Positions 1 through 64,000 of a DNA stretch of 64,000 nucleotides are shown here, in pieces. Every line of letters begins with the position of its first letter. The first letter of the stretch is position 1. The notes beneath the pieces were generated by a model. The model ran no database searches. It was not told the DNA's origin and was given only the letters and a program-made list of their open reading frames with translations. Origin of the DNA: Thalia democratica (lineage: Eukaryota); the NCBI GenBank assembly GCA_965202585.1, contig OZ241829.1, forward strand, positions 29,698,001 through 29,762,000, written 5' to 3'. A program made the translations under genes and the position numbers.

Positions 1-1014
1 AAGCTGAACAAGTTATCAAAGTAAAACACTCGTAACTTTTTAGAATTAGAAAGCGAGTTTTTAAAGTTTTTGGTTTTATCAAACTTAGCCAGAAACTTTT
101 TTATTTAATAGTCATCTATTATTACACAAAATTAAAACTGTATATGTTTCAGAAATTTATAATTTCTAAATCTACTTATTAAAATACTGTTTTAAAAAAC
201 TTAGCATTCTTAGATTTCAATTTGCTTTTACATTACTACTGGCAGATTCTTACTAGTAGTCCCAAGTTGTGTTGCTGAAATTTGAATTACCTTACCTAAC
301 AGCTCTAAAACTTAAATGAAATAGTTTTTTTTATAATTATATTCAATTTCTTCTATACTGCTAAGAATTTATTAAGTAAGCCTATATAAATAGTATATCC
401 ATTTTAAAATTAAAATTTTATTTTCAAGATATGATTCATTTAAGTTTTTATAACAATTTGAATTGTAAGATTTCAAATGTCGAAATTTAACTGTCAAGTA
501 ATTTTATTTACAATATAATACGAAAAATCTAACGCTTAGTTAAGTAAGTATTTATAGTTATGCCGCAAAAACTGATAAATCTTTAACTAAACCCATACTT
601 AAAAATAAAAATCACTTAAAAAGTTCAAAGTTTGATAAAAGACTTATAAAACGCACAATTAAAGTTACCTAAGACTTGTAAATACATTTTAGTGGTAGTT
701 TCGTTGTTACAAACTTTTATTTTTAATTTAACTAGATTTTAAGTATACCTCAATTATTGTTTAATTTAGTTACCTTATATTTATGTAAAATGATACAATC
801 ACTACGATAGAAAAAGTGGTAATTTAAGTACAAAAACTTAATATTGGAACAATAATTAATTCTAAAAATTATATTCTGCAGAAAGCTTAGATAATATAAT
901 CTTATAATCAATGTTTATAGATGTGAAATACCTCTAAACTTAGATACCTTAGTGTTGTATAAACTAACAAAAGTATTACAAGGAAAAAGTAAAAACAATT
1001 ATGTTAATACTTAC

Positions 1015-4000
1015 TCTTTAAGCATCTCATTGGGTTGGCTGTGTCGAAAGGTGGTGAAAGTGCTCCATTTTGGCAAGTTCTTTTTGGCACATCGGTCGAA
1101 AGGGAAGCATACCCTTCTGAACAGTTGTAAGTTGTACTTTGGCCATGATTAATCGGCGCTGCTGGATATGGCTGAGAGTTCGTTACAGTATGAAAATCAT
1201 TGCAATCTGAAATTATTTTAGTGCTTTGATCTTTAAATTTTTAAAGTATTTTTCAATATTGTTATTTGTTTTTACTTGCTGACTTATATGTGCAATATTC
1301 TAAAGTGCATATTATATTAAGATAGTTTTTTACGGTAAGATGGCGGTACTGATTACATTTATGTAATGAATTATGTAGCTTTAGAAGTTTTCAATATAAA
1401 ACTTTTGTATTCAAATAAGTTTTAATTACTGTTAAGACTTTAATTACGTTCTGTTCTTTAAGTTACCAAAAGTTACAGTAAAACTTCATTTGAAGCCGAA
1501 AAACTTTAGATTTTTAGACTATGAAAAACTTAACATTTTAGAAATATGAATTAAAACAAATTCCACTATGTTAGTGTTTTCAACTTACTTTGGTAACATA
1601 TGACTTCAGTATCTGGATTGAGCTCGCCGTCATTACAAGTTCTAGTATCGTCCCCGGTCAGTGTGTAGTTTTCATTGCATTCAAAAGTTACAGTTTCTGA
1701 AGAAATATAAACCGTCCTACCGTCTTTAGTATCACCGTTCGCAGGCTTGGTTATTGTGCACTCTGTTTATAACAGTACTTTGGTTTTAAAGTTTGTAGCA
1801 AACAATAATGCTTAAAAGCTATAATTTAAGATTTATATCAATTTTAATGAAATTTTGCAAGTCGAATTGAACTTCTAACAAACATGTTAAAACCTTTTTG
1901 TTTGATAAACTTGAATAAGTATAACTGAAGCTGAAACACTTTTATTAATTTTACAAAAAAAAAACACAAAGAAGTTAAAAAACCAAAAAATACTCTTATT
2001 TAAGTACCTTGTAGTTGAAAACATGAAAGAGGTTATTTAAAAAGTACAATTGCTTAGTACTACAATACAATGCAAAACAAGTATGTAAATAAAAAGCTTA
2101 TGTGCTAAAATTTTTAATTAAATAATAATTTCAATGTATATGATAAGTAAATTCAAAAAGTTATTAAGATAGAAGAAAGTTGAAGAATTTTATAACTCCT
2201 GCTTAAAAATAATTAGAATACTTAAGTTGTTTTAAACATCGTCCAATAGTATTTTTTTTCTTGATGGTTTGTATAACGAGTGTAGAACTTTAAAACAAAC
2301 CTTAGCTAAATTGTATCATTTCTAACCTTAAGTATTTGATGTTTGAAAGTTATATTCTGCAGAAAACTTAAATAATAATTATTCTATAATCAATTTTATT
2401 AGATGTGAAACATCTCTAAATTTAGGTACCTTAGTGCTGTATAAACTAACAAAAGTACTAAAGGAAAAAATAAAAACAGTTATGTTAATACTTACTCTTT
2501 AAGCAACTCATTGGGTTGGCTGTGTCGAAAGGTGGTGAAAGTGCTCCATTTTGGCAAGTTCTTTTTGGCACATCGGTCGAAAGGGAAGCATACCCTTCTG
2601 AACAGTTGTAAGTTGTACTTTGGCCATGATTAATCGGCGCTGCTGGATATGGCTTAGAGTTCGTTACAGTATGAAAATCATTGCAATCTGAAATTATTTT
2701 AGTGCTTTGATCTTTAAATTTTTAAAGTTTTTTTCAATATTGTTATTTGTTTTTACTTGCTGACGTATATGTGCAATATTCTAAAGTGCATATTATATTA
2801 GGATAATTTTTTACGGTAAGATGGCGGTACTGATTACATTTATGTAATGAATTATGTAGCTTTAGAAGTTTTCAATATAAAACTTGTGTATTCAAATAAG
2901 TTTTAATTACTGTTAGGACTTTAATTACGTTCTGTTCTTTAAGTTACCAAAAGTTACAGTAAAACTTCATTTGAAGCCGAAAAACTTTAGATTTTTAGAC
3001 TATGAAAAACTTAACATTTTAGAAATATAAATTAAAACAAATTCCACTATGTTAGTGTTTTCAACTTACTTTGGTAACATATGACTTCAGTATCTGGATT
3101 GAGCTCGCCGTCATTACAAGTTCTAGTATCGTCCCCGGTCAGTGTGTAGTTTTCATTGCATATAAAAGTTACAGTTTCTGAAGAAATATAAACCGTCCTA
3201 CCGTCTCGAGTATCACCGTTCGCAGGCTTGGTTATTGTGCACTCTGTTTATAACAGTACTTTGGTTTTAAAGTTTGTAGCAAACAATAATGCTTAAAAGC
3301 TATAATTTAAGATTTATATCAATTTTAATGAAATTTTGCAAGCCGAATTGAACTTCTAACAAACATGTTAAAACCTTTTTGTTTGATAAACTTGAATAAG
3401 TATAACTGAAGCTGAAACACTTTTATTAATTTTACAAAAAAAAAAACACAAAGAAGTTAAACAACCAAAAAATACTCTTATTTAAGTACCTTGTAGTTGA
3501 AAACATGAAAAAGGTTATTTAAAAAGTACAATTGCTTAGTACTACAATACAATGCAAAACAAGTATGTAAATAAAAAGCTTATGTGCTAAAATTTTCAAT
3601 TAAATAATAATTTCAATGTATATGATAAGTAAATTCAAAAAGTTATTAAGATAGAAGAAAGTTGAAGAATTTTATAACTCCTGCTTAAAAATAATTAGAA
3701 TACTTAAGTTGTTTTAAACATCGTCCAATAGTATTTTTTTTCTTGATGGTTTGTATAACGAGTGTAGAACTTTAAAACAAACCTTAGCTAAATTGTATCA
3801 TTTCTAACCTTAAGTATTTGATGTTTGAAAGTTATATTCTGCAGAAAACTTAAATAATAATTATTCTATAATCAATTTTATTAGATGTGAAACATCTCTA
3901 AATTTAGGTACCTTAGTGCTGTATAAACTAACAAAAGTACTAAAGGAAAAAATAAAAACAGTTATGTTAATACTTACTCTTTAAGCAACTCATTGGGTTG

Positions 4001-16754: not shown

Positions 16755-17210
16755 GTCTAAATTGCACGAAGATACTTTTCCACGAAGATAAATTGGCACG
16801 AGCAGATAAAATTGCACGATGACAATTTTGCATGGAGGGTCATATTTGCGAGCGAGTGAAAAAAATATACATATATAAAACAGAAAAATAAAAACTAAAA
16901 GATAAATTAATAAAACAATAAAAAAAGTTACATACCTAGGGTAAGGGTTAAGTTTAACTGTGATAGTAAAAGAAAAAAAAAATAAAAATTATTAAAGTAA
17001 AAAACAATAAATAAAAATAAAATTATTAAAAAGAAAAATAAGTTACCGACCGAGGGTAAGGGTTAGGGGTACAGTGAATGTAAAAAAAATAAATAAAAAT
17101 AAAAATTCAATACTTGCAAAATTGTCTACACGTGCAAAATTTTCTTCGTGCAAAAGTGTCTTCGTGCAATTTTGTGCCCTCGTGCAATTTTGTACGCTCG
17201 CGCAAAATGA
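16755..17210. mobile_element. Foldback/MITE-like element with modular inverted termini
   Basis: AAATTGCACGA modules at about 16760-16855 are inverted as TCGTGCAATTT modules at about 17114-17208. The A-rich centre carries two GGGTAAGGGTTA motifs. Confidence 0.7.
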
Positions 17211-34474: not shown

Positions 34475-34512
34475 CTGTGAAAAAATAAAAAAATCGTTAT
34501 TAACTCACGTCT

Positions 34513-44498: not shown

Positions 44499-45150
44499 CT
44501 TAGTAGTATGTATAAAAATAATATTACTGTGCTCAAAAATAATAATTTTTTAGCATTTAATTTAACTACTTATTATTAGCATTACTTAATTATTAGAATC
44601 TACTTTTAGAATTTACGATTATTTTGTTTAACTTTTATTTTTCAGGTTTAAATTGTAACTGAATATCCTTTAAAGGGTGAAACTTAGTTTTGAAACTAAA
44701 AATCTTTAATAATTAATTTTGTACTAAATACATGTAATAAATGTTCAATACTTAATATTTTTCAAACTTTTTTTTTTAAATTTTGAGAATTCTAAAATGC
44801 GTAACTAAAGGAGAGTGCGTAACCAAAGGAGCGCGTAGATTCGCGAGAGGTGACTGTACTAAGGTTTTACATAAAAGAAAACAGGAAGTAAACATTACAA
44901 TTTATTTTGATAAAAATACACAACTGATTATAAAGTTCTAAAGTTTAAAAAAATTATATTTTTTATACTCGCCAAATTTTACATTACAAATTGTTAAAGC
45001 TTAAAATTGGTTTTAAACTTATCATACATTAACGCTTGGCTTAATTGATAAACTTGAGTTCTCAAGTTCTTTGTAGTGAAGTTAAGTAAAAACAAAACAA
45101 AGGTAAACTCTTATAATTTATTACTTTATGTACTACATGTAAAAAAGCAT

Positions 45151-45156
45151 TTTATT
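45151..45156 (-). terminator. Candidate poly(A) signal of the right CCP gene
   Basis: AATAAA on the minus strand about 290 nt past the stop at 45447; such hexamers are common in AT-rich DNA. Confidence 0.3.
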
Positions 45157-45446
45157 AATTTGTTTTTGTTAAAATTAATCTTTCGAATTAAAAAAAGTAA
45201 AAAAAAACATGCAGAACGGTTACAAAGTCACAGAAGACACCCAAATATATGTGCCTTGACAGCATGGTGCACAGTTTGCATAAGTCATATTTAGGTAAAG
45301 TAACTTAATCAAATTTTGTTTTAAGAAAAGGTATAAAGACTTTAAATAATTGATCAGTTAACTGAAAACGTTTAGTCGCCTAAAGTTTCAGGCTGGTGTC
45401 AGTAAAAAATTAAACAATTAACTTAATGAATGCTTTTAGTGATAGT

Positions 45447-45584
45447 CTAGCAATGGAAAAGCTCAAATCGCAAGGTCCATTGTAGATAGTGTGTTACCAA
45501 AGTGATTCGAAAATATCTTGCAGTAACTGGCACTGGTAGCCTATTGATATGAGGCGTGTCATAGTGTTTATTTGCCATAAAAAT
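45447..45584 (-). CDS. Terminal exon of the right CCP gene; end of the F5/8 type C domain and TAG stop
   Basis: IFMANKHYDTPHINRLPVPVTARYFRITLVTHYLQWTLRFELFHC*, matching the discoidin P..ARY.R....LR.EL.C ending; phase-0 acceptor. Confidence 0.9.
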   Translation of the reverse strand: MFMANKHYDTPHINRLPVPVTARYFRITLVTHYLQWTLRFELFHC

Positions 45585-47045
45585 CTACAAAATATTTACT
45601 TTAGTAAATTTACAAATACAAAATAATTAAGAGTTATTGCTAAAAACTAATTGATTTTTAACATACGTTTATTAAGTATGATTTGACCATTTTTTTTATC
45701 AGTTTCAACAAAACGGGTTGTTAACCAGATTTCGAATTTTTAACAAATTATTTTCACCTCGTAATAAAAAAGTTGCATAGTACTAGGAGCAAAAACAATC
45801 AAATATTAGGTAAAGTAAAGTGGTTTATGAAAACTAAAGTTGTTTTTACGAATAAAAATAATCTCTTACCAATAAAAGTATATATCACCGTTTTAAGTCA
45901 AATTTTTTTTTAGTCATATCAAACCCAAAAACGTGTTGTAGCTGGTGTAGGTTAGTTTACATTTACAGTAAAAATCTTTTTGACTTAGTTATGTAAGTTA
46001 ATTTGTCCTGGACAAGACGTTAAAGTGTATCCAAGTGGTGTGCGACTCGATAACCGAAATGTTTTTTCGTGCACTAGGTCCTAATATTTTGTGTGCTTTT
46101 TGTCGTTCAATAAACAATAATAATAGAAAGTTAAGCTAATAAAACTAGTAAAAAGCGTTCAAATGTCACTGTTCTTTTAAAATTTTTGGTGAAAATATAA
46201 AAACATGCTTGCAATTTACATATCCAATTCCCTAATTTTAATGCTAAGTTATTTATGATTGCGTTTTAGGATTACACGATGTAGAAATGTTGATGGCAGT
46301 TCTCTAGTAATCATTATGAAGAAATAGTATGAATAGAGATATTTTTAGTAACTTTACTAAAACTTACAAATATTTTTTTGTGATGAAAAAAAGAGGTGAT
46401 ACAATATTTTACTCGTTTTTATTCTTGCTATATACAATCTTAATTTTTTGTCTGTCTATTTAAATACTTTAGATAGTAAAAAAAAAAGTTCACTTTAATA
46501 GGTTGACAACAAAGTATAAGTACATTAAGCAAGAAAACAAAATTGACGTTTTCTTAATAACAAGAATCTTCATTTAAAAAACAAAGTATCCTTTTTCTTG
46601 ATTAAAAAATAAAATTAAAGAAATAATAAAACTGAAACTGGTTTAAAATATTTTTTATTCAAGACAATGCTGTAGAAATTTGAAGTATTCTTTTATAATT
46701 GGAATAAAAATATTTTTTAGGATTTCAAACACATATACCATAAAAACTTGAATTAGTATTTTTTGATTTTACCGGGAATTAAAGATCATCTAAACTATTT
46801 TTTTTGTATTTTTGACATATTAAATGTCTTTTAGACATAAGCTGCTTTGATATCCCATCTTTTATATTCTACGAATAAACTTTTAACATATGCGCCAAAT
46901 ACTTATTTGATAAATTTAAAATTCTCTATGAAATTTAGATAACGTTTGAAAAACTTTTAGTTTTGTTTGCAATAACGAACAAGTCAAAAAATAAATTCGT
47001 TTAGATTTGAAAAAAACTAGAAAAATAAGAACGTTTTAAACTTAC

Positions 47046-47206
47046 AACAATTTTTCCACTTCCGTCAACTACATTTTGTAATTCGTCTTCAGAGTTAGTT
47101 TTATACTGGCAAGAATAAGAAGTCGTATATGGATTTTTACCTCTTCCCTGCGTTGCAACTTTGTGAATTGTTCTTTCTAATACAAGGTCTACTTGAATCC
47201 ATTTCT
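47046..47206 (-). CDS. F5/8 type C (discoidin) exon 2
   Basis: EKWIQVDLVLERTIHKVATQGRGKNPYTTSYSCQYKTNSEDELQNVVDGSGKIV; WIQVDL and ATQGR motifs; phase 1-0. Confidence 0.92.
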
Positions 47207-47548
47207 CTTTTAGGGATGTTTTAAGTTAGTGAAAAAATGCATTGAAATATCACTAACAACTAATAAAAGCAGTGTTTACTTAAAAGAAGATAAAACATCA
47301 CTAATATTATATTGAATGGTATATTTGTTCCCAGTTACAAAAAAACATAATTTCCAACGTTACATAGTAAATGCCGTAGCTTTTAAAGTTAAGTTTAAAC
47401 CGTTTTTTAGAAAAATACTCAAATTCCGTATTGAATGTAGGTATTCAAAATATTTTCTTTTAGAAAAAGTAGCCGTAAGTTTTTTTTTTCGATCTAAAAG
47501 CACTGTATGAAAATCGAAAACCTGATTGAATGAGAAAAGTGCGCTAAC

Positions 47549-47737
47549 CTGGAGCTCGATGAAAAATGGTCCAAGCGAATGGTTCAAATTCGAACAGTCG
47601 AGCAAACTGCGGACCAAACCTGCATTTTGTTGGCGTTTCTTCGTAACAATCGTCGACATCGTCGTAAGCGTAACCGCTTGCAGTCACTTGGCTGTTGGTG
47701 ATGGTGCCGCTGGTCATTCCCAAACCGCACGCTTCAA
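47549..47737 (-). CDS. F5/8 type C (discoidin) exon 1
   Basis: VEACGLGMTSGTITNSQVTASGYAYDDVDDCYEETPTKCRFGPQFARLFEFEPFAWTIFHRAP; LGMxSGxI..SQxTAS and ARL..AW motifs. Confidence 0.92.
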
Positions 47738-48076: not shown

Positions 48077-48313
48077 CTTCGGCCTTAACGGCGGCTCTGT
48101 CGCACCCCGGGGGGTTCACCCAATCTCCAAGCCCGGGATTTTCTTCGGTCACATTGCACTGGGCAATTCCGCTGCTCACTGTTTTATCGCAAAACTTGGA
48201 GCTTTCGCAAACAAAGTCAAACTCCTCCGTGCTCACGTACTTTCCCGGTACCACGACGGGATCTCTCGGTGTTAAAGTGTCCAGGCACAAGGAGTACTGC
48301 AAGTCCGGACACT
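48077..48313 (-). CDS. CCP-like exon with 6 Cys, right gene
   Basis: ECPDLQYSLCLDTL...FDFVCESSKFCDKTVSSGIAQCNVTEENPGLGDWVNPPGCDRAAVKAE; 237 nt, phase 1-1. Confidence 0.85.
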
Positions 48314-48632
48314 CTGTCGCGTTAAATTTCAGTACACTTCAGTTGCCTGAGCGGACGCACAAAAATAGTTTGAAAACTAACGCATTAGATTAATGCCATA
48401 AAGTAGAAACGATTATAGCTGATACGTGTACAATAAACTTAAAATAAATACATTACACTATGTATTCTTTATTAGTGTTCCCTTTCTATTGTATTAATAT
48501 TTTAATCTGACTTGAAAGTGTTAAATAAATATTTTTCTCCGTTTTACGTATGCCATAAACCATTAAAAACAGAAAACAAAGCAGCTAAGTCATTATCAAC
48601 TTAAACTGAAACAAATGATATTGTTTTCATAC

Positions 48633-48833
48633 CTTTCACACATATAGGAGCCTCAGAACTACTCCATTGTCCGTCGTGGTCGCAAATGTTTATATTTGAA
48701 GAGCCTGGCCACACAACCAAGCCGTTTTTGCACCTGTACTCGACTACAGTGTTGGTCAGCATTCTACCATCCGCTTCACTGCTAGAAATGACAAAAAAAT
48801 CAGTTTCGTCGTTTTCTGGTAAATCTTGGCATT
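48633..48833 (-). CDS. CCP exon, right gene
   Basis: ECQDLPENDETDFFVISSSEADGRMLTNTVVEYRCKNGLVVWPGSSNINICDHDGQWSSSEAPICVK; 201 nt; not in the ORF track. Confidence 0.9.
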
Positions 48834-49413
48834 CTGTGTAAATAAGAGCTTTGATGAAAGCAGTTGTTATTTAAAAAAAATATGTTGCAGATGTCTCTTA
48901 CAGTTTTCAAACCGTGTAAAGTTTATAATTTGGATTTTAAAGAATATACACAATTTTTAAATTTTTTGTTACTATACACTAAAAGAAAGCTTTGAATAAA
49001 GAAGCAAATTTTTTTTTTAAGTTTTATATTTAAACCACAGCTTTGATATAATTAAAATTTTAGTTCTTAATCTTTTTAAACTTATCAAGCCAAAGAACTT
49101 AAAGTTTTCAATTATATAACTTTAAAATATAATTTACTATTAGGCTTTTTTGGTAAAAACTTAGACTATTTTATTTTATTGAATTACAAAATAAAACTGT
49201 GCTTCGGTTGTCAAGTCTAAAAAAAAGTGCTATTTATAACGCTTGCCAAAATAACAGACTAGCAAAAACTTTAAGAGTGTAGCATAGACGTAAAATTTAA
49301 GAACTCAAACTCATTTGTTTAACACAGAAACTGTAGAAAAGTGAAAGGTTGTCTACCGTTTAATAGGATTTTCAATTAAAGAACACCTCTATTCAAAATT
49401 CAAAACATTGAAC

Positions 49414-49593
49414 CTTTAAGGCAGGCTGCGCGGTCCTTCCACCCCATCGTTGTGCACTCTATCCGTCCGGTGTCGGGCCGAGGTATGGCTCCCGGGTCGC
49501 ACGTGAACTCGACGGTTTCGCCGTGCGTGTACTTCTGATCCGCGTCGAAATGGTACTTTCCGTTGTGGAAGTCAGGAAGCGGACTCGGACAAT
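49414..49593 (-). CDS. CCP exon, right gene
   Basis: DCPSPLPDFHNGKY...EFTCDPGAIP...ECTTMGWKDRAACLK; 180 nt. Confidence 0.92.
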
Positions 49594-50266: not shown

Positions 50267-50395
50267 CGTCGTATACAAAATTTTTGTCTATTACGAGAGC
50301 ATTAAAGTTTCCATCGTATTTACATTCCGCCCAGCTCGGAACCGCAGCGTGTTCTGGAAATCTGCCAGTAAGTACAGCCCAAGATTCTGAGTTGC
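50267..50395 (-). CDS. ILEI/PANDER-like domain exon 3
   Basis: GNSESWAVLTGRFPEHAAVPSWAECKYDGNFNALVIDKNFVYD; the SWAxL motif fits the end of ILEI domains. Confidence 0.75.
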
Positions 50396-50460
50396 CTAAA
50401 AAAAAAACGATTTCACCAGGTTTGCCAGGAGTAATATTTTGAAGTAGGGCTTTTAAAAAC

Positions 50461-50632
50461 CTGGAAATAGTGTGCAGTCTTTCAAACGATCAATACCGAG
50501 TCTTCTCATAGTGTCAAACACCGGACCATCAGTGTTAATATTTTTCTCTGCGGCTGCTTGCCCACGTACTGTCATCATGATAATGTCCCCGTAACTTGAG
50601 TTATTTAATATAAAATCTGACATTCGTACAAT
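50461..50632 (-). CDS. ILEI/PANDER-like domain exon 2
   Basis: IVRMSDFILNNSSYGDIIMMTVRGQAAAEKNINTDGPVFDTMRRLGIDRLKDCTLFP; phase 0-1; fits the RLxDFL..GxIVLxxVxD..LG pattern. Confidence 0.8.
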
Positions 50633-51165
50633 CTGAAATTTAAGAACTAAATTGTATTTTGGTTTCTATGTCAAAAAGTGTAGATGATGTTTGGTATTTT
50701 TAGCATGTGTTTTCGTACAAGATGTTATAAAGTGTATAGTGTTAAACAATAATTAAATACTATTTTTCAGTTTAAAGCAAAAATTTTTTTTTCTAGCATG
50801 CTGTACAGAAGTTAGTACCTCATGTATTATTGTTATAACTTAGATTTCTAAATAATAAAAACTAAAATTAAGAAAGAGTAGTTTTTTTCTTATGGATTTG
50901 GATTTATGTAAATAATATAAAGTCTAAATACAATAAAGTTTATATAAAACCTTTCTAAAAATAAAAAACGGAAATTTCTGTTATACTTTTAGCTGCGTAA
51001 TTACAAAAATATTTCTAGAGTTATTAAACAAAGCTTCAACTCAGCGTGGAATATCTTAAAGTTATTTTACTGAATTAAATAAAAAAAGCTTCTAAAACAA
51101 AAACTCTAATTTTTGCTAAACCGTGCTTAAAGTCTGAAACAAAATTTATCAAAAAAAAACTGTAC

Positions 51166-51356
51166 ATGTTCGTGACCCCGGACAGTGTCAAACTTCATCG
51201 ATTGGATAGTTCTAGTAATTGGATCGAGTATGGCAACGCCGATTCCTCTGGTACTATCGCACAAATTGTTCCCACCCTTTTCAAACTTGATTACGCAATT
51301 CTGTCCCAAAGCATTCGTGTCATATCCTCGTGATAAGCCATAAGCATACAACTCAG
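51166..51356 (-). CDS. ILEI/PANDER-like (GG-type lectin fold) domain exon 1
   Basis: TELYAYGLSRGYDTNALGQNCVIKFEKGGNNLCDSTRGIGVAILDPITRTIQSMKFDTVRGHEH; RGIxVAxLD..FDT motif. Confidence 0.8.
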
Positions 51357-51431
51357 CTGAAATTGAAGCATTTAAACAGTTACGTTTCGCGTTTACGTTT
51401 TCTGCTTGTGCCTGTATAACAGCTAGCTTAC

Positions 51432-51632
51432 TTGGCTCGCAGACCGGGGGCTCAGTGTGATCCCAGGTACCATCATCTTGACAGGTTATTTCTTCCGGAT
51501 ACTCGCCAGCCATTTCGTGAAACTTGTCGCACTCGTAGCTGTGCACAGTTGTTCCGGGTAACCAAACTTCATCGGCTGTTTCGTATGTAACTTGGTACTT
51601 CGAATAACCGGTTGTGGGTGGGTCTGGACAAA
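51432..51632 (-). CDS. CCP exon, right gene
   Basis: CPDPPTTGYSKY...SYECDKFHEM...TCQDDGTWDHTEPPVCEP; 201 nt; gtaagc donor. Confidence 0.92.
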
Positions 51633-52342
51633 CTGTGTTAAACAGCATGGTTTTAACGCTCTTTTTTGTTGAGTTTTGTAGACAAAACTTTGCTTAGTTT
51701 GAAGAATTTCAACTCATAGTTTTATAAAATCCTAAAATTTTTCATTTTAAAAAATTAAAAATTGTTTAAAGAGACGCTGGTTTTCGTTTGGTGTTAAGCT
51801 TTAAAAGTTATTTATTCTGGATAAGTTACTTTGTCCGATAAAATTGATATACACTGTTGAAATTTTGCGAAAATTAGGTACTTTTAATATTTTATCTTTA
51901 TTATGAATACTTTTTTATGATTTTTGTTTGTTACCTACAAAATAAATATAAATAAAAAAGAAGCAGATTATTTGTGTAAACAAACGTTAAGATTAAAACT
52001 ATAAATTATTCATTATCACTTAAAGTTTAGTTACAAATGTAAAATTTAAGTTCAAGGAACAAACTATAAACACCTTAAGTTATAAAAGTCATTTAAGATT
52101 TTGACAATTGCTACATTTTTGATCTTTAAAGTATTTAGTTTTAATGCACAAACTAAGATGTTTTGATAGTGTCAAAAATTGTTTTAATAAAAATCTTAAT
52201 ACTCTGACTCGGCTATCTTGTTAATTAGAAACATATTTAAGTTCATTAAACGAAAATTAACTGTACTTAAGAACCTTATTGTTGTATAAACAAGCTTTCT
52301 AATTCAGCAAACGTCGTTCTTACTGAAATTCATGTGACTTAC

Positions 52343-52513
52343 GCTTGGAACATTTAGCTTGCGCACCCCAACCGGTTTCTCCACACTCAATCACACCACT
52401 TAGTGGCCATGCTCCACTGTCGCATTTAAAACCAACGGTATCACCTTGAGCGTAGTTGCTTGAAAGTTCTTCGTCGTAGTCTCCGTTTGCAAATTCCGAT
52501 GGCTTTGAACACG
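52343..52513 (-). CDS. CCP exon, right gene
   Basis: CSKPSEFANGDY...GFKCDSGAWPLSGVIECGETGWGAQAKCSK; 171 nt. Confidence 0.92.
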
Positions 52514-52753
52514 CTGTAATGATCAAACAGTTGAGGGTTTGAGCAAACAAAGTTTGCCAGCAGTTAAATACGACCTTTTATTTTTGAAAAAGTCAATGCA
52601 AGAAAGACGTAAATGTAAGTCCGTAGTAAATAACTTTAGATAATAAAAGTAAGATGTCATTTAAATCACCTTCAATGAAAAAACAAACTAGTTAGGTCAC
52701 TAACTTTACCTTAACATAAGACAGATAAGCAGTATGAAATATACAGAACTGAC

Positions 52754-52954
52754 ATATAGGTACACAAGTAGCCAAATCTTCTGTTGACACGCTGAAGAGT
52801 CCACTTCCAAGGCACTCTGTAGAAAGTGCTTTAGAGTTTTCTCCGTGAGCAAAATACCCGGTATTGCATTCGTAACTCAAAGTAGTTCCTTCCGTAACAT
52901 ACTTTTCAGGATTATTGAAAGTTCCGTCAACTATCTCTGGCGGATCATTACAAA
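52754..52954 (-). CDS. CCP exon immediately after the array, right gene
   Basis: CNDPPEIVDGTF...SYECNTGYF...ECLGSGLFSVSTEDLATCVPI; 201 nt. Confidence 0.92.
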
Positions 52955-53983: not shown

Positions 53984-56900
53984 TCTTTAAGCAACTCATT
54001 GGGTTGGCTGTGTCGAAAGGTGGTGAAAGTGCTCCATTTTGGCAAGTTCTTTTTGGCACATCGGTCGAAAGGGAAGCATACCCTTCTGAACAGTTGTAAG
54101 TTGTACTTTGGCCATGATTAATCGGCGCTGCTGGATATGGCTGAGAGTTCGTTACAGTATGAAAATCATTGCAATCTGAAATTATTTTAGTGCTTTGATC
54201 TTTAAATTTTTAAAGTTTTTTTCAATATTGTTATTTGTTTTTACTTGCTGACTTATATGTGCAATATTCTAAAGTGCATATTATATTAAGATAGTTTTTT
54301 ACGGTAAGATGGCGGTACTGATTACATTTATGTAATGAATGTAATAGCTTTAGAAGTTTTCAATATAAAACTTTTGTTTTCAAATAAGTTTTAATTACTG
54401 TTAAGACTTTAATTACGTTCTGTTCTTTAAGTTACCAAAAGTTACAGTAAAACTTCATTTGAAGCCGAAAAACTTTAGATTTTTAGACTATGAAAAACTT
54501 AACATTTTAGAAATATGAATTAAAACAAATTCCACTATGTTAGTGTTTTCAACTTACTTTGGTAACATATGACTTCAGTATCTGGATTGAGCTCGCCGTC
54601 ATTACAAGTTCTAGTATCGTCCCCGGTCAGTGTGTAGTTTTCATTGCATTCAAAAGTTACAGTTTCTGAAGAAATATAAACCGTCCTACCGTCTTTAGTA
54701 TCACCGTTCGCAGGCTTGGTTATTGTGCACTCTGTTTATAACAGTACTTTGGTTTTAAAGTTTGTAGCAAACAATAATGCTTAAAAGCTATAATTTAAGA
54801 TTTATATCAATTTTAATGAAATTTTGCAAGCCGAATTGAACTTCTAACAAACATGTTAAAACCTTTTTGTTTGATAAACTTGAATAAGTATAACTGAAGC
54901 TGAAACACTTTTATTAATTTTACAAAAAAAAAACACAAAGAAGTTAAAAAACCAAAAAATACTCTTATTTAAGTACCTTGTAGTTGAAAACATGAAAGAG
55001 GTTATTTAAAAAGTACAATTGCTTAGTACTACAATACAATGCAAAACAAGTATGTAAATAAAAAGCTTATGTGCTAAAATTTTTAATTAAATAATAATTT
55101 CAATGTATATGATAAGTAAATTCAAAAAGTTATTAAGATAGAAGAAAGTTGAAGAATTTTATAACTCCTGCTTAAAAATAATTAGAATACTTAAGTTGTT
55201 TTAAACATCGTCTAATAGTATTTTTTTTCATGATGGTTTATATAACGAGTGTAGAACTTTAAAACAAACCTTAGCTAAATTGTATCATTTCTAACCTTAA
55301 GTATTTGATGTTTGAAAGTTATATTCTGCAGAAAGCTTAGATAATATAATCTTATAATCAATGTTTATAGATGTGAAATACCTCGAAACTTAGATACCTT
55401 AGTGTTGTATAAACTAACAAAAGTATTACAAGGAAAAAGTAAAAACAATTATGTTAATACTTACTCTTTAAGCAACTCATTGGGTTGGCTGTGTCGAAAG
55501 GTGGTGAAAGTGCTCCATTTTGGCAAGTTCTTTTTGGCACATCGGTCGAAAGGGAAGCATACCCTTCCGAACAGTTGTAAGTTGTACTTTGGCCATGATT
55601 AATCGGCGCTGCTGGATATGGCTGAGAGTTCGTTACAGTATGAAAATCATTGCAATCTGAAATTATTTTAGTGCTTTGATCTTTAAATTTTTAAAGTTTT
55701 TTTCAATATTGTTATTTGTTTTTACTTGCTGACTTATATGTGCAATATTCTAAAGTGCATATTATATTAAGATAGTTTTTTACGGTAAGATGGCGGTACT
55801 GATTACATTTATGTAATGAATGTAATAGCTTTAGAAGTTTTCAATATAAAACTTTTGTTTTCAAATAAGTTTTAATTACTGTTAAGACTTTAATTACGTT
55901 CTGTTCTTTAAGTTACCAAAAGTTACAGTAAAACTTCATTTGAAGCCGAAAAACTTTAGATTTTTAGACTATGAAAAACTTAACATTTTAGAAATATGAA
56001 TTAAAACAAATTCCACTATGTTAGTGTTTTCAACTTACTTTGGTAACATATGACTTCAGTATCTGGATTGAGCTCGCCGTCATTACAAGTTCTAGTGTCG
56101 TCCCCGGTCAGTGTGTAGTTTTCATTGCATTCAAAAGTTACAGTTTCTGAAGAAATATAAACCGTCCTACCGTCTTTAGTATCACCGTTCGCAGGCTTGG
56201 TTATTGTGCACTCTGTTTATAACAGTACTTTGGTTTTAAAGTTTGTAGCAAACAATAATGCTTAAAAGCTATAATTTAAGATTTATATCAATTTTAATGA
56301 AATTTTGCAAGCCGAATTGAACTTCTAACAAACATGTTAAAACCTTTTTGTTTGATAAACTTGAATAAGTATAACTGAAGCTGAAACACTTTTATTAATT
56401 TTACAAAAAAAAAAACACAAAGAAGTTAAAAAACCAAAAAATACTCTTATTTAAGTACCTTGTAGTTGAAAACATGAAAGAGGTTATTTAAAAAGTACAA
56501 TTGCTTAGTACTACAATACAATGCAAAACAAGTATGTAAATAAAAAGCTTATGTGCTAAAATTTTTAAATAAATAATAATTTCAATGTATATGATAAGTA
56601 AATTCAAAAAGTTATTAAGATAGAAGAAAGTTGAAGAATTTTATAACTCCTGCTTAAAAATAATTAGAATACTTAAGTTGTTTTAAACATCGTCTAATAG
56701 TATTTTTTTTCATGATGGTTTATATAACGAGTGTAGAACTTTAAAACAAACCTTAGCTAAATTGTATCATTTCTAACCTTAAGTATTTGATGTTTGAAAG
56801 TTATATTCTGCAGAAAACTTAAATAATAATTATTCTATAATCAATTTTATTAGATGTGAAACATCTCTAAATTTCGGTACCTTAGTGCTGTATAAACTAA

Positions 56901-59900
56901 CAAAAGTACTAAAGGAAAAAATAAAAACAGTTATGTTAATACTTACTCTTTAAGCAACTCATTGGGTTGGCTGTGTCGAAAGGTGGTGAAAGTGCTCCAT
57001 TTTGGCAAGTTCTTTTTGGCACATCGGTCGAAAGGGAAGCATACCCTTCTGAACAGTTGTAAGTTGTACTTTGGCCATGATTAATCGGCGCTGCTGGATA
57101 TGGCTGAGAGTTCGTTACAGTATGAAAATCATTGCAATCTGAAATTATTTTAGTGCTTTGATCTTTAAATTTTTAAAGTTTTTTTCAATATTGTTATTTG
57201 TTTTTACTTGCTGACTTATATGTGCAATATTCTAAAGTGCATATTATATTAAGATAGTTTTTTACGGTAAGATGGCGGTACTGATTACATTTATGTAATG
57301 AATGTAATAGCTTTAGAAGTTTTCAATATAAAACTTGTGTATTCAAATAAGTTTTAATTACTGTTAGGACTTTAATTACGTTCTGTTCTTTAAGTTACCA
57401 AAAGTTACAGTAAAACTTCATTTGAATCCGAAAAACTTTAGATTTTTAGACTATGAAAAACTTAACATTTTAGAAATATAAATTAAAACAAATTCCACTA
57501 TGTTAGTGTTTTCAACTTACTTTGGTAACATATGACTTCAGTATCTGGATTGAGCTGGCCGTCATTACAAGTTCTAGTATCGTCCCCGGTCAGTGTGTAG
57601 TTTTCATTGCATATAAAAGTTACAGTTTCTGAAGAAATATAAACCGTCCTACCGTCTTTAGTATCACCGTTCGCAGGCTTGGTTATTGTGCACTCTGTTT
57701 ATAACAGTACTTTGGTTTTAAAGTTTGTAGCAAACAATAATGCTTAAAAGCTATAATTTAAGATTTATATCAATTTTAATGAAATTTTGCAAGCCGAATT
57801 GAACTTCTAACAAACATGTTAAAACCTTTTTGTTTGATAAACTTGAATAAGTATAACTGAAGCTGAAACACTTTTATTAATTTTACAAAAAAAAAAACAC
57901 AAAGAAGTTAAAAAACCAAAAAATACTCTTATTTAAGTACCTTGTAGTTGAAAACATGAAAGAGGTTATTTAAAAAGTACAATTGCTTAGTACTACAATA
58001 CAATGCAAAACAAGTATGTAAATAAAAAGCTTATGTGCTAAAATTTTCAATTAAATAATAATTTCAATGTATATGATAAGTAAATTCAAAAAGTTATTAA
58101 GATAGAAGAAAGTTGAAGAATTTTATAACTCCTGCTTAAAAATAATTAGAATACTTAGTTGTTTTAAACATCGTCCAATAGTATTTTTTTTCTTGATGGT
58201 TTGTATAACGAGTGTAGAACTTTAAAACAAACCTTAGCTAAATTGTATCATTTCTAACCTTAAGTATTTGATGTTTGAAAGTTATATTCTGCAGAAAACT
58301 TAAATAATAATTATTCTATAATCAATTTTATTAGATGTGAAACATCTCTAAATTTAGGTACCTTAGTGCTGTATAAACTAACAAAAGTACTAAAGGAAAA
58401 AATAAAAACAGTTATGTTAATACTTACTCTTTAAGCAACTCATTGGGTTGGCTGTGTCGAAAGGTGGTGAAAGTGCTCCATTTTGGCAAGTTCTTTTTGG
58501 CACATCGGTCGAAAGGGAAGCATACCCTTCTGAACAGTTGTAAGTTGTACTTTGGCCATGATTAATCGGCGCTGCTGGATATGGCTGAGAGTTCGTTACA
58601 GTATGAAAATCATTGCAATCTGAAATTATTTTAGTGCTTTGATCTTTAAATTTTTAAAGTTTTTTTCAATATTGTTATTTGTTTTTACTTGCTGACGTAT
58701 ATGTGCAATATTCTAAAGTGCATATTATATTAGGATAATTTTTTACGGTAAGATGGCGGTACTGATTACATTTATGTAATGAATTATGTAGCTTTAGAAG
58801 TTTTCAATATAAAACTTGTGTATTCAAATAAGTTTTAATTACTGTTAGACTTTAATTACGTTCTGTTCTTTAAGTTACCAAAAGTTACAGTAAAACTTCA
58901 TTTGAATCCGAAAAACTTTAGATTTTTAGACTATGAAAAACTTAACATTTTAGAAATATAAATTAAAACAAATTCCACTATGTTAGTGTTTTCAACTTAC
59001 TTTGGTAACATATGACTTCAGTATCTGGATTGAGCTCGCCGTCATTACAAGTTCTAGTATCGTCCCCGGTCAGTGTGTAGTTTTCATTGCATTCAAAAGT
59101 TACAGTTTCTGAAGAAATATAAACCGTCCTACCGTCTTTAGTATCACCGTTCGCAGGCTTGGTTATTGTGCACTCTGTTTATAACAGTACTTTGGTTTTA
59201 AAGTTTGTAGCAAACAATAATGCTTAAAAGCTATAATTTAAGATTTATATCAATTTTAATGAAATTTTGCAAGCCGAATTGAACTTCTAACAAACATGTT
59301 AAAACCTTTTTGTTTGATAAACTTGAATAAGTATAACTGAAGCTGAAACACTTTTATTAATTTTACAAAAAAAAAAACACAAAGAAGTTAAAAAACCAAA
59401 AAATACTCTTATTTAAGTACCTTGTAGTTGAAAACATGAAAGAGGTTATTTAAAAAGTACAATTGCTTAGTACTACAATACAATGCAAAACAAGTATGTA
59501 AATAAAAAGCTTATGTGCTAAAATTTTCAATTAAATAATAATTTCAATGTATATGATAAGTAAATTCAAAAAGTTATTAAGATAGAAGAAAGTTGAAGAA
59601 TTTTATAACTCCTGCTTAAAAATAATTAGAATACTTAAGTTGTTTTAAACATCGTCCAATAGTATTTTTTTTCTTGATGGTTTGTATAACGAGTGTAGAA
59701 CTTTAAAACAAACCTTAGCTAAATTGTATCATTTCTAACCTTAAGTATTTGATGTTTGAAAGTTATATTCTGCAGAAAACTTAAATAATAATTATTCTAT
59801 AATCAATTTTATTAGATGTGAAACATCTCTAAATTTAGGTACCTTAGTGCTGTATAAACTAACAAAAGTACTAAAGGAAAAAATAAAAACAGTTATGTTA

Positions 59901-62470
59901 ATACTTACTCTTTAAGCAACTCATTGGGTTGGCTGTGTCGAAAGGTGGTGAAAGTGCTCCATTTTGGCAAGTTCTTTTTGGCACATCGGTCGAAAGGGAA
60001 GCATACCCTTCTGAACAGTTGTAAGTTGTACTTTGGCCATGATTAATCGGCGCTGCTGGATATGGCTGAGAGTTCGTTACAGTATGAAAATCATTGCAAT
60101 CTGAAATTATTTTAGTGCTTTGATCTTTAAATTTTTAAAGTTTTTTTCAATATTGTTATTTGTTTTTACTTGCTGACGTATATGTGCAATATTCTAAAGT
60201 GCATATTATATTAGGATAATTTTTTACGGTAAGATGGCGGTACTGATTACATTTATGTAATGAATTATGTAGCTTTAGAAGTTTTCAATATAAAACTTGT
60301 GTATTCAAATAAGTTTTAATTACTGTTAGGACTTTAATTACGTTCTGTTCTTTAAGTTACCAAAAGTTACAGTAAAACTTCATTTGAATCCGAAAAACTT
60401 TAGATTTTTAGACTATGAAAAACTTAACATTTTAGAAATATAAATTAAAACAAATTCCACTATGTTAGTGTTTTCAACTTACTTTGGTAACATATGACTT
60501 CAGTATCTGGATTGAGCTCGCCGTCATTACAAGTTCTAGTATCGTCCCCGGTCAGTGTGTAGTCTTCATTGCATATAAAAGTTACAGTTTCTGAAGAAAT
60601 ATAAACCGTCCTACCGTCTCGAGTATCACCGTTCGCAGGCTTGGTTATTGTGCACTCTGTTTATAACAGTACTTTGGTTTTAAAGTTTGTAGCAAACAAT
60701 AATGCTAAAAAGATATAATTTAAAATTTATATTAATTTTAATGAAATTTTGCAAGCCGATTTGAACTTCTAACAAACATGTTAAAACCTTTTTATTTGAT
60801 AAATCTGGTCTAAAAGAGTTTTATTAAAGCTTGAATGTCAATAAGTATAACTGAAGCTTAAATACTTTTACTAATTTTACAAAAAAAAAACCACTAAGAA
60901 GTGGGTAGCTTCAAATTTACACTACTGTTTTTGATTTACTTGAAAATCATTCAACTAATTTGCACATTTGCTGAGTCAGCAAAATGTTTTAAAAGCTTTT
61001 TTCAATTTTTTTCTATATTTATACCCTTAACTCTTAACTTTACCCAAACATTGAAAAAAAATCAAAATTAAAGTTTTATTATTTAAATAAAAAAGTAAAC
61101 AAGAAAAAAAAATCGCTGACTTATCAAATTTGCAAATTAGTTGCACGATTTTCAAGTAAGTCAAAAACAGTAGTGGAAATTTGAAGCTAACCAAAAGAAG
61201 TTTAACAACCAAAAAATACTCTTATTTAAGTACCTTGTAGTTGAAAACATGAAAGAGGTTATTTAAAAAGTACAATTGCTTAGTACTACAATACAATGCA
61301 AAACAAGTGTGTAAATAAAAAGCTTATGTGCTAAAATTTTCAATTAAATAATAATTTCAATGTATATGATAAGTAAATTCAAAAAGTCATTAAGATAGAA
61401 AAAAGTTGAAGAATTTTATAACTCCTGCTTGAAAATAATTAGAATACTTAAGTTGTTTTAAACATCGTCTAATAGTATTTTTTTTCTTGATGGTTTGTAT
61501 AATGAATGTAGAACTTTAAAACAAACCTTAGCTAAAACTGTATCATTTCTAACCTTAAGTATTTGATGTTTGAAAGTTATATTCTGCAGAAATCTTAAAT
61601 AATAATTATTTTATAATCAATTTCATTAGATGTCAAACACCTCTAAATTTAGGTACCTTAGTGTTGTGTAAACTATCATAAGTATTAAAGGAAAAAGTAA
61701 AAACAATTATGTTAATACTTACTCTTTAAGCAACTCATTGGGTTGGCTGTGTCGAAAGGTGGTGAAAGTGCTCCATTTTGGCAAGTTCTTTTTGGCACAT
61801 CGGTCGAAAGGGAAGCATACCCTTCTGAACAGTTGTAAGTTGTACTTTGGCCATGATTAATCGGCGCTGCTGGATATGGTTGAGAGTTCGTCACAGTATG
61901 AAAATAATTGCAATCTGAAATTATTTTAGTGCTTTGATCTTTAAATTTTTAAAGTATTTTTCAATATTGTTATTTTTTTTTACTTGCTGACATATATGTG
62001 CAATATTCTAAAGTGCATATTATATTAAGATAGTTTTTTACGGTAAGATGGCGGTACTGATCACATTTATGTAATGAATTATGTAGCTTTAGAAGTTTTC
62101 AATATAAAACTTGTGTATTCAAATAAGTTTTAATTACTGTTAGGACTTTAATTACGTTCTGTTCTTTAAGTTACCAAAAGTTACAGCAAAACTTCATTTG
62201 AAGTCTAAAAACTTTAGATTTTTAAACTTTGAAAAGCTTAAAATATTAGAAATATGAATTAAAACAAATTCCACTATGTTAGTGTTTTCAACTTACTTTG
62301 GTAACATATGACTTCAGTATCTGGATTGAGCTCGCCGTCATTACAAGTTCTAGTATCGTCCCCGATCAGTGTGTAGTCTTCATCGCATACAAAAGTTACA
62401 GTTTCTGAAGAAATATAAACCGTCCTACCGTCTTTAGTATCACCGTTCGCAGGCTTGGTTATTGTGCACT
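53984..62470 (-). CDS. 12 repeated CCP exons (6 x B-A pair), right gene
   Basis: A: 53984-54175, 55465-55656, 56947-57138, 58428-58619, 59909-60100, 61723-61914. B: 54558-54731, 56039-56212, 57521-57694, 59001-59174, 60483-60656, 62297-62470. All are open with intact splice sites. Confidence 0.93.
60903..61192. mobile_element. Second copy of the 290-bp Mutator-like MITE
   Basis: Same TIRs and same position as 13862-14151 (offset 47041). Confidence 0.8.
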
Positions 62471-62920
62471 CTGTTTATAACAGTACTTTGGTTTTAAAGT
62501 TTGTAGCAAACAATAATGCTAAAAAGCTATAGTTTGTTTATAAGTATTTTATATATTTATTTGATAATTTTACAAGCCATTATTAAATTTTTGAATCTTT
62601 AAGGCTTTAACTTTATGTATAACAAAAGATTATGTTTATAAAACTAAAAAAACTATACTAAAATGAAAGTTGTTGCTTGTTGATAATATAGTTCAAAACT
62701 TGGGAAACTTGGTAATTTTTACATATTGCAAATCATTTTCGTTATTTTGATTTATATATGTAATGACAATTATAAACAGGTACTCATTAAGAAATTTAAG
62801 TTTCCTCTCAAACTTACCTCTTGGACCAATCGTAGGCATTAAGAAAAAGAACGGCAAATAAAAAAACACAAGCACAGATATTGAACTATCCAAGGAAACA
62901 GAGATAAACCTCAAACGAAC

Positions 62921-63112
62921 CTGGTATGCACTGCACGGCCGGATGCCATTTGCCGTCCACGCCGCAAGTGGAAGCACTCGAGCTCAGCCTGTGCTTTTCT
63001 TCGCAGGTCACCACAGCTTGGGTGCCGTTGAGGTAGACTCCTTCGCCCCGTTCGTTTTCGATCGCATAAGAAGACGATCTCGAGTTTTCGGGAGGAGAAA
63101 AGTCGTCGCATT
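62921..63112 (-). CDS. CCP exon (paralogue of 15880-16071), right gene
   Basis: Same protein; one synonymous change seen (AAA to AAG). Confidence 0.9.
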
Positions 63113-63383
63113 CTGTGATAATTACTTGCGCTTTGTACTTTGTTTTCGAGTAGCTAGTTATTTAAAAGTTTCCCTGCTGTTATCTGTACAATTGTGTTTT
63201 GTTCCAAAAAAGGTAGCTCGGTCGAAATGAATAAGGAGTTTGAAAAGTTCAATGAACACACTAATAAAACTATTATTGATTATTTTTTAACTGGTAACAC
63301 AAAATTGTTCTAAACATTCAGACAAAAACTTGTTGACGAAAGCTTCAAACTATGAAACTGTGATCAAAACAATTTTTTTTTAC

Positions 63384-63584
63384 GTTTCAAGCAGATTGGG
63401 AAAGTTGTTGGTTCCCATCTAGCGCCTCTCTCGCACCCGAACTCAACATTGGAAACGTCGTCCAAATGGTAGCCTTCGAAGCAGGCGTAGTTCACTTTTG
63501 AAGATTTAATATCGCCGTTGTCCAGCCTTATTGTCTCTATAGCCGTTACTATCGAATTGTGAACATGTGGGGGATTTTCGCAAA
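63384..63584 (-). CDS. CCP exon (paralogue of 16343-16543), right gene
   Basis: Same protein; one synonymous change seen (AAC to AAT). Confidence 0.9.
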
Positions 63585-63795
63585 CTGAAATAAATTAATT
63601 GTTTAACTTAATCGTGCTTTATGAGTATCTTTACAACTATTTATGATTTATTCAGAAAAGTATATATCCTTTTTTTAAAATAATTCTGATTTATCAAGCA
63701 CAGAATTACAACATAAGCTACGAAAACTCCCCCGACACAGCTGTATAAAATTTTTAACTACAACACCAAATTTAAGCTAGTAAGTTTGGGAACGG

Positions 63796-64000
63796 GTCAA
63801 AATTGCACGAAGATACTTTTCCACGAAGATAAATTGGCACGAGCAGATAAAATTGCACGATGACAATTTTGCATGGAGGGTCATATTTGCGAGCGAGTGA
63901 AAAAAATATACATATATAAAACAGAAAAATAAAAACTAAAAGATAAATTAATAAAACAATAAAAAAAGTAACATACCTAGGGTAAGGGTTAAGGTTAACT
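63796..64000. mobile_element. Left part of the foldback element copy (paralogue of 16755 onward), cut by the window edge
   Basis: AAATTGCACGA modules and GGGTAAGGGTTAAGG at the window end. Confidence 0.65.

Follow-up and report, generated by a model that had tools for sequence, protein, structure and literature searches.

A tandem array in Thalia democratica pairing a giant gene of CCP modules and putative lectin-type domains with a polysaccharide-lyase-like gene

We analysed a 64,000-nucleotide stretch of the Thalia democratica genome (GenBank assembly GCA_965202585.1, contig OZ241829.1, forward-strand positions 29,698,001 to 29,762,000; G000:C5:29698001-29762000 in the 802 Mb assembly), hereafter referred to as the window. 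It contains parts of a giant gene built from complement control protein (CCP) modules, together with a neighbouring gene that combines an EGF module with a polysaccharide-lyase-like region. The G+C content of the window is approximately 28%, long open reading frames (ORFs) are absent and short cysteine-rich ORFs are numerous on the minus strand. This is the landscape of an intron-rich animal gene, and a bacterial or phage context for the locus was rejected because the exon-intron architecture is of animal type. Self-comparison over 164 kb (the window, 70 kb before it and 30 kb after it) revealed three tandem units of ~53 kb on the minus strand, denoted A (located before the window), B and C. 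In every unit the EGF and lyase-like gene comes first and the giant CCP gene follows. Of giant C, the window covers the 3' three fifths (64000-45447), and of giant B the 5' four fifths (28771-1); the lyase-like gene of unit B lies between them at about 41350-34516. The features belonging to the giant gene are as follows.

1015-28771, minus strand: in-window part of giant B, 42 exons with AG/GT borders in phase 1-1; CCP1-22 at 28771-15880 and ten B/A cassettes (20 exons) at 15429-1015
53984-64000, minus strand: giant C, with CCP21-22 at 63584-62921 and six B/A cassettes at 62470-53984; twenty 5' exons lie beyond the window
51433-52954, minus strand: CCP23, CCP24 and CCP25 of unit C; the CCP25 exon (51632-51166) also holds the start of the ILEI-like domain
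50267-51432, minus strand: ILEI/FAM3-like domain of unit C, 189 residues, exons 51432-51166, 50632-50461 and 50395-50267
48077-49593, minus strand: CCP26, CCP27 and an atypical CCP-like module of unit C, at 49593-49414, 48833-48633 and 48313-48077
45447-47737, minus strand: F5/8C (discoidin) domain of unit C, three exons at 47737-47549, 47206-47046 and 45584-45447, the stop following directly after the last cysteine
29787-29838, minus strand: candidate first coding exon of giant B, with an ATG, 17 codons, a moderately hydrophobic core and a phase-1 donor C/GTAAGT

Every CCP exon was found to fit an AG...GT model in phase 1-1 with a length divisible by three, and the exon borders fall a few residues at most (usually one) before the first cysteine of the module and a few after the last. 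The remaining exons of the giant were derived from splice sites and reading frames. When joined, giant B comprises 53 exons with GT-AG introns, extending from window position 28771 to -7619 and encoding 3,424 codons (10,277 nt) with a single, terminal stop. The part that runs 7.6 kb before the window contributes three CCP modules, the ILEI-like domain, three further CCP modules, F5/8C and the stop. Giant A reads as B (53 exons, 3,424 residues, 48 CCP-type modules), and giant C consists of 45 exons encoding 2,936 residues and 40 CCP-type modules with no internal stops. The module order is CCP1-22, a (B,A) cassette repeated ten or six times, CCP23-25, ILEI-like, CCP26-28, F5/8C and stop, so that the joined exons (3,424 codons) confirm the architecture put forward in the original prediction. 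That prediction counted about 48 CCP modules for ten cassettes and 40 for six, provided the parts outside the window matched; these parts match at 99.9%, with the last module being atypical. Each cassette consists of a 174-nt B exon and a 192-nt A exon repeated with a period of 1,482 bp, in 10 copies in units A and B and 6 in unit C. The length of the protein is set by this homogenised 1,482-bp two-exon cassette.

The cysteine pattern of CCP modules is fitted by 47 exons. At the level of Pfam, the Sushi profile (PF00084) scores above cut-off for CCP1, CCP25 and the B cassette exon, and the A cassette exon is borderline (20.2 bits vs a cut-off of 20.7). The 48th module (48313-48077) has surplus cysteines and no Pfam match. 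For the C-terminal F5/8C domain, PF00754 matches the second exon with 31.3 bits (cut-off 28.2, profile positions 34-82) and the last exon with 24.6 bits (E 3e-5, profile positions 87-127), and the flanking cysteine pair consists of one residue at the beginning of exon 1 and one that is the final residue of the protein. The giant B protein contains 204 cysteines and 41 N-x-S/T sequons, with an isoelectric point (pI) of 4.66. Its peak 19-residue Kyte-Doolittle mean is 1.19, which gives no membrane span and agrees with the earlier observation that a hydrophobic anchor is missing. A membrane receptor was considered and rejected, as hydrophobic segments are absent and nothing follows the last F5/8C cysteine.

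Within the supposedly unique part of the giant, CCP8-11 (24930-23677) and CCP19-22 (17975-15880) are mutual best matches, module by module, at 35, 43, 42 and 47% identity, which points to an old four-module block duplication. The CCP20-CCP21 intron holds a 115-bp tandem repeat (16884-17107, 1.9 copies, 78% matches). The 52 introns of giant B use 33 distinct donors, all GT, with the +3 base being A in 15, T in 12, C in 4 and G in 2. The donor consensus is thus relaxed, with T or C at +3 in 16 of the 33. Splice signals are reported to be loosened in tunicate genomes (PMC13326754), and the donors of the giant fit this description. At the 5' end, the donor of the candidate start exon (29787-29838) fits the phase-1 acceptor of CCP1, and an AG lies 25 nt upstream of its ATG. 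This exon is identical in A, B and C, and the 60 nt preceding it carry 4 substitutions and a 4-nt indel in unit C.

Units A and B are 99.7-99.9% identical, and units B and C share 97.6% identity across the CCP gene and 94.2% across the lyase gene. Two segments of the window mark the limits of B-C homology.

31742-34031: 2.3-kb stretch in the lyase-CCP1 interval that units A and B share and C lacks (break in the B-C alignment)
41207-45446: junction of duplication units, made up of the giant C 3' flank, a ~500-bp dispersed repeat and the stretch 41204-41881

The B-C homology on the lyase side ends at 41207, and the flank past the last unit matches 41204-41881, the same stretch that is present at the internal junctions. 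The junctions therefore have the look of true tandem duplication. The dispersed repeat in the junction (44000-44500, between giant C and lyase B) recurs genome-wide at 92-95% identity, with 2,747 first-look candidate copies, 40 of which were scored; it is probably a young transposable element or short interspersed element (SINE), and no tRNA or Rfam family was found in 41000-45500.

Comparison of the units provides a measure of selection. Across 21 of the 22 unique CCP exons (4,173 nt), giants B and C show a proportion of synonymous differences (pS) of 0.0237 and of non-synonymous differences (pN) of 0.0034, a ratio of 0.14; giants A and B differ by one residue over the unique CCP exons compared. 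The lyases of B and C yield a pS of 0.065 and a pN of 0.0053 over 318 codons, a ratio of 0.08. Both the CCP stalk and the lyase are under purifying selection. A role in allorecognition had been suggested earlier, but the stalk pN/pS of 0.14 between copies and the lack of hypervariability argue against a polymorphic receptor.

An ortholog of the 3' end of the giant is available on a 9,064-bp contig (L046) from an environmental ENA assembly, with ~90% DNA identity. It contains all 11 C-terminal exons, the AG/GT sites are kept and the stop is the same. Its alignment has no gaps in 2,246 exon columns, compared with 8.2% gap columns in the introns. Between our own units, the 64-65-nt intron within the ILEI-like domain changes in length by steps that are not multiples of three. 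The pN/pS ratios, the exon conservation in L046 and the variable length of this intron are therefore the marks of a functional gene. When compared with L046, the ratio of non-synonymous to synonymous rates (dN/dS) is 1.46 for the ILEI-like domain, 0.95 for F5/8C, 0.86 for CCP23-25 and 0.37 for CCP26-28, and the contrast between the ILEI-like domain and CCP26-28 is significant (Fisher P 0.0025). Both heads show a relative excess of amino-acid changes over the neighbouring CCP modules, which is significant for the ILEI-like head only. Overall, substitutions in exons (9.35%) exceed mismatches in introns (6.4%). As frames and splice sites are intact, this suggests that the putative binding heads are under relaxed or diversifying selection, with the stalk being constrained.

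The domain inserted between CCP25 and CCP26 was originally assigned to the ILEI/PANDER type. At least nine paralogs in the genome possess the same three-exon ILEI-like structure between CCP exons, one of which also has an F5/8C domain. An alignment of this paralog family was compared by hhalign with the ILEI region of a POMGNT1-type protein, a close relative of which is labelled PF15711 in precomputed Pfam annotation. In the first run, 98 colinear columns aligned in the expected register with P 0.016, and one of 200 column shuffles scored as high. Inclusion of the ortholog lowered P to 0.001 and brought the match to 104 colinear columns. The alignment keeps what we take to be the motif positions of the family, namely an RG-x-G-V-A-I strand, F-D-T, G-D-[IV]-I-x-M and the S-W-x-V-x-T-G region. 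The profile match lends moderate support to the 189-residue domain being of ILEI/FAM3 type, and the assignment stands to that extent, with Pfam remaining silent on single exons. A hidden Markov model (HMM) made from the Pfam-positive ILEI exons of this genome, which belong to another ILEI-like subfamily, did not match the domain, and AlphaFold2 predictions for ILEI exon a alone (6 sequences) were unusable, with a mean predicted local distance difference test (pLDDT) score of 50. Members of the fold, FAM3C and the POMGNT1 stem, bind N-acetylglucosamine (GlcNAc) and other sugars (PMC9802357). The genome also holds a POMGNT1-like gene (L023, G000:C7:21655568-21657828), with an ILEI stem and a GT13 catalytic domain in an intronless frame of at least 555 codons, close relatives of which (653 residues) occur in ENA, JGI and Logan data.

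Each giant is preceded by the EGF and lyase-like gene. Its features in unit B, along with the first exons that bear on it, are listed here.

34516-40583, minus strand: EGF plus polysaccharide-lyase-like gene of unit B; EGF exon 40583-40458 in phase 1-1 (Pfam EGF_3), last exon 34700-34516
39749-39676, 37876-37583, 36334-36258, 35934-35854 and 35515-35387, minus strand: further coding segments of lyase B
34504-34545, minus strand: end of the lyase reading frame, with a possible phase-1 donor ACG/GTCAGA (exon end 34539) and a consensus donor GAC/GTGAGT 7 nt past the stop
41296-41353, minus strand: 19 hydrophobic codons with a phase-1 donor GTATTA, which may serve lyases A and B as a replacement first exon
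86931-86877 in window-equivalent positions, off the window (L018, G000:C5:29784877-29784931): signal-peptide exon of lyase C, with the EGF exon of that gene ~1.5 kb downstream

The lyase frame ends in a TAA at 34518-34516, and the in-frame stop is present in all three units. The signal-peptide exon of lyase C is excellent, consisting of a Met and a Phe/Leu run, ending K-T-N-G and followed by a GTGAGT phase-1 donor. It is single copy in the 164 kb and lies outside the duplicated unit, and lyases A and B, which are under purifying selection nonetheless, therefore need another first exon. The 98-residue exon of the lyase in the window has 12 relatives in the genome. The only three matches of the genome to PF14099 (Polysacc_lyase; best E 0.012, whole genome) are located 2.2-3.3 kb downstream of three paralogs of this exon, a spacing equal to that of the corresponding exons in the window. 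It is through these paralogs that the neighbour can be read as a putative polysaccharide-lyase-like gene of bacterial type. What the original prediction called a glycosaminoglycan lyase is a constrained EGF gene with PF14099 near its paralogs, the lyase identity being unconfirmed on the exons of the window. The main lyase exon (37580-37900) has a G+C content well above that of its 28% G+C surroundings and is open in several frames on both strands. A G+C-rich lyase exon would fit a foreign origin.

The giant starts 3.4-5.7 kb downstream of the lyase gene. Three diverged lyase paralogs elsewhere on C5, at 17.96 Mb and 26.36/26.44 Mb, are followed in the same orientation by CCP1-like exons (34-36% identical), at distances of 10 kb and 19.9 kb. 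By our own arithmetic, with 39 CCP1-like exons in 802 Mb, chance would place a CCP1-like exon next to a lyase at about 5e-4 per locus. The linkage of lyase and giant is non-random, the pair having been copied as a unit and recurring at two other, diverged places. Lyase paralogs with a CCP1-like exon occupy C5:26.31-26.44 Mb and 17.95-17.96 Mb, and two of them are 81 kb apart. There are hints of a second tandem array of lyase plus large CCP gene at C5:26.31-26.44 Mb. At least 12 paralogous giants, recognised by a CCP1-like and an ILEI-like exon on one strand with the former 13-44 kb upstream, have no lyase match nearby, and the giant therefore does not need the lyase. It belongs to a lineage-specific family of at least 12 similar genes, most of them without a lyase neighbour. 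The pair had been described as head-to-tail and as possibly working together. Lyase then giant is indeed the order, but the pair is one unit of a three-unit array. Duplication of the unit to three copies, constraint on both partners and recurrence at two places speak for more than a chance adjacency, and the at least 12 giants without a lyase speak against a required pairing.

A cytochrome P450-like gene is located on the minus strand directly upstream of the array, off the window (window-equivalent 89990-92200, L018), and its exons contain the I-helix motif and the motif of the haem-binding cysteine region.

Our overall reading, to which we assign a probability of roughly 0.5, is that of a three-unit array with two genes per unit, in which a lectin-tipped CCP rod is encoded beside a lyase-like gene. 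The giant product would be secreted, judging by its exclusively extracellular-type disulfide modules, the missing anchor, the 41 N-glycosylation sequons and a pI of 4.7. CCP modules of factor H and CR1 measure 3-4 nm in length. At 3-4 nm each, 40-48 CCP modules would extend to a rod of roughly 150-190 nm. The two heads may bind carbohydrate ligands on particles, on microbes or in extracellular or mucus matrix. Because the modules are of extracellular type, an anchor is missing and two domains from sugar- or lipid-binding families sit at one end, we favour the giant being a lectin-tipped tether or agglutinin in mucus or matrix, as opposed to a complement regulator. The neighbouring lyase would probably act on acidic polysaccharides in the same extracellular compartment, and the two genes may be kept together by co-duplication, possibly with shared regulation. 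A specificity for heparan sulfate or other sulfated glycans, and a role in defence, are conjecture.

A number of results weigh against the lectin-tipped rod and its lyase-like partner. For the ILEI-like domain, Pfam did not match single exons of this gene or 13 paralog exons, PDB profile searches with ILEI exons a and b returned spurious designed repeat proteins only, and a protein atlas search with exon a alone gave no usable matches. A search of 1.84 billion representative proteins with exon a recovered no recognised family, the matches being an ORF of 96% identity in an environmental ENA assembly, a single short fragment and two false matches of low complexity. This silence of the exon-wise searches fits the 90-position Pfam ILEI model being split over three exons. 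The lyase exons of the window, taken singly, likewise had no match in Pfam, in a PDB sequence search or in the protein atlas, and no relatives among bacterial genomes or in a protein homolog search. The dN/dS above 1 of the ILEI-like head is not significantly different from neutrality (P 0.13). The candidate start exon of the giant encodes a weak signal peptide, so both secretion and the 5' end of the giant are unproven; the earlier call of a secreted protein is supported by its extracellular-type modules and missing anchor, and not by a convincing signal-peptide exon. Lastly, a phase-compatible donor before the lyase stop makes a fused isoform possible.

This last point raises the question of whether each unit contains two genes or one. 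We consider two separate genes the likely arrangement, because the lyase TAA is kept in all units, at least 12 giants exist without a lyase, giants A and B are constrained despite lacking the signal exon of lyase C, and a candidate start exon with a GTAAGT donor is present. In a one-gene model, at least one isoform would read signal peptide-EGF-lyase-CCP40-48-ILEI-F5/8C, with the lyase tethered to the lectin-tipped stalk and the form using the stop giving soluble lyase. The phases permit it, as the donor at 34539, 7 codons before the stop, joins in frame to the CCP1 acceptor, both being phase 1, with GTC as the junction codon. Of the 33 distinct donors in the giant, 4 are likewise of the GTC kind, and the donor of the EGF exon is GTCAGT; one gene and two cannot be told apart by donor strength. 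No convincing signal-peptide exon is found upstream of CCP1, and lyase C has an excellent one. The joint duplication of lyase and giant, and the lyase followed by a CCP1-like exon at the two other diverged loci, are in line with a single gene as well. However, the in-frame stop occurs in all three units, and the only consensus donor, GTGAGT, sits after it and cannot yield a fusion protein. The closer paralogs of the giant, at least 12 of them, have no lyase, and in units A and B, which are without the signal-peptide exon of lyase C, a fusion would need a new first exon too. We regard the one-gene model as unlikely. Slightly more doubtful still is the bolder proposal that lyase and rod are, or recently were, one gene, in which a lyase of bacterial descent would sit at the N-terminus of a ~170-nm CCP stalk with two lectin-type heads at the far end, and the choice of donor at the stop would switch between free and tethered enzyme. 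Were a fusion true, the two other lyase-CCP loci would mark a family of tethered glycan-cutting proteins. Orthologs of the junction region were not recovered, either by a homologous-protein search with the CCP1 ORF or by two scans of metagenomes that used CCP1 and the last exon of the lyase. A separate concern is the assembly itself, since units A and B might be one locus, or two haplotypes, written twice. They have equal cassette counts (10), 99.7-99.9% identity, and no synonymous and one non-synonymous difference across 4,173 coding bases. The junctions nevertheless show real tandem-duplication structure, with the flank of the last unit matching 41204-41881, and B and C are clearly distinct in identity (97.6% and 94.2%), cassette number (10 vs 6) and the 2.3-kb indel. 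An artefact in part of the array is accordingly rather improbable.

With regard to function, a purely structural role is a serious rival, as tunicate house proteins also mix CCP and lectin modules. The rod would then be a component of a coat or feeding-mucus net, its heads cross-linking a polysaccharide scaffold that the lyase remodels, with no part in recognition or defence. In oikosins, the house proteins of tunicates, CCP modules occur together with lectin domains for which binding to the cellulose scaffold is proposed (PMC3390340). A large family, tandem copies, a length set by cassettes, and an acidic protein with glycosylation sequons and no anchor would all suit a matrix component. Against this, the heads evolve faster than the stalk (exons 9.35% over introns 6.4%, ILEI-like dN/dS 1.46), a pattern more usual for recognition of a changing ligand, and polymerisation domains (ZP, VWD) are absent. 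On balance we judge the structural role unlikely, serious as it is. Far less probable is a regulator of complement activation in the sense of factor H or CR1, with CCP modules that bind C3b-like fragments and self glycans and so protect host surfaces. Long CCP strings, CR1-like internal blocks (CCP8-11 resembling CCP19-22) and a homogenised cassette array are what such a regulator would share with the giant. Vertebrate regulators, however, consist of CCP modules only, and the giant has ILEI-like and discoidin heads; among 1.84 billion proteins it has no relatives beyond near-identical environmental copies of the locus, and at least 12 such giants exist in the genome. The lectin-tipped tether beside a lyase-like gene thus remains the reading we favour.

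If this reading is true, the lineage assembles extracellular rods of great length out of shuffled phase-1 exons, with the length tuned by a homogenised exon-intron cassette, and different sugar-binding heads cap the rods and outpace the stalk in evolution. The giant would then be a candidate molecule with which a filter-feeding chordate relative might recognise particles, microbes or matrix. The link with the lyase raises the question of whether a bacterially derived glycan-cutting enzyme was recruited to work with the rod, or was fused to it. If the reading fails, the locus is one more lineage-specific mosaic matrix protein. In the literature searched, neither a CCP-ILEI-F5/8C protein nor a PL13-type lyase from an animal was found described, and the original statement that the architecture is not recognised as a named gene holds, with no matching family found in that literature or among the 1.84 billion proteins.

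Among known systems, the other giants of this genome have the layout of this one, with a CCP1-like exon 13-44 kb upstream of a three-exon ILEI-like domain. It is set apart from them by its F5/8C end, a single ILEI-like domain, the 1,482-bp two-exon cassette and the triplicated unit with a lyase-like gene. Likeness to factor H and CR1/CD35 lies in the long CCP strings with one phase 1-1 exon per module and, for the long homologous repeats of CR1, in higher-order repeats whose homogenised array sets the length. Factor H recognises glycans, and the heads of the giant come from families of sugar- or lipid-binding type. In contrast to factor H and CR1, which are CCP-only, with CR1 membrane-anchored, the giant combines 40-48 CCP modules with ILEI-like and discoidin domains and no anchor; sequence orthology to either was not found. 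The tunicate allorecognition or variable CCP receptors of the fester/uncle fester and vCRL1 type are membrane-anchored with high CCP variability, whereas the giant is without a hydrophobic segment and has a pN/pS of 0.14 for CCP1-22 between B and C.

For the heads, the FAM3/ILEI superfamily, including the POMGNT1 stem, provides a colinear profile match (P 0.001). The members known so far are either small and secreted or form the stem of a glycosyltransferase, whereas in the giant the domain, with its putative fold, is an insert in a CCP chain. Factors V/VIII, MFG-E8/lactadherin and retinoschisin resemble the giant in a C-terminal F5/8C domain closed by a first-to-last cysteine pair, a family that binds lipids or galactose-type glycans. 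These proteins pair F5/8C with A domains or EGF, whereas its partners in the giant are CCP modules, dozens of them. Bacterial heparinase I (PL13) and PF14099 resemble the lyase-like neighbour by way of paralogs close to the three PF14099 matches of the genome; unlike the bacterial enzymes, the neighbour is an intron-containing animal gene that includes an EGF module and, in unit C, a signal-peptide exon, its substrate and activity being putative. The oikosins of the Oikopleura house are secreted tunicate matrix proteins and resemble the giant in mixing CCP with lectin domains (PMC3390340), but they have few CCP modules and other partners, and a combination with ILEI or F5/8C is not reported there. 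Against this background the locus is a new combination of known parts within a lineage-specific family, the link to the lyase being its most interesting aspect.

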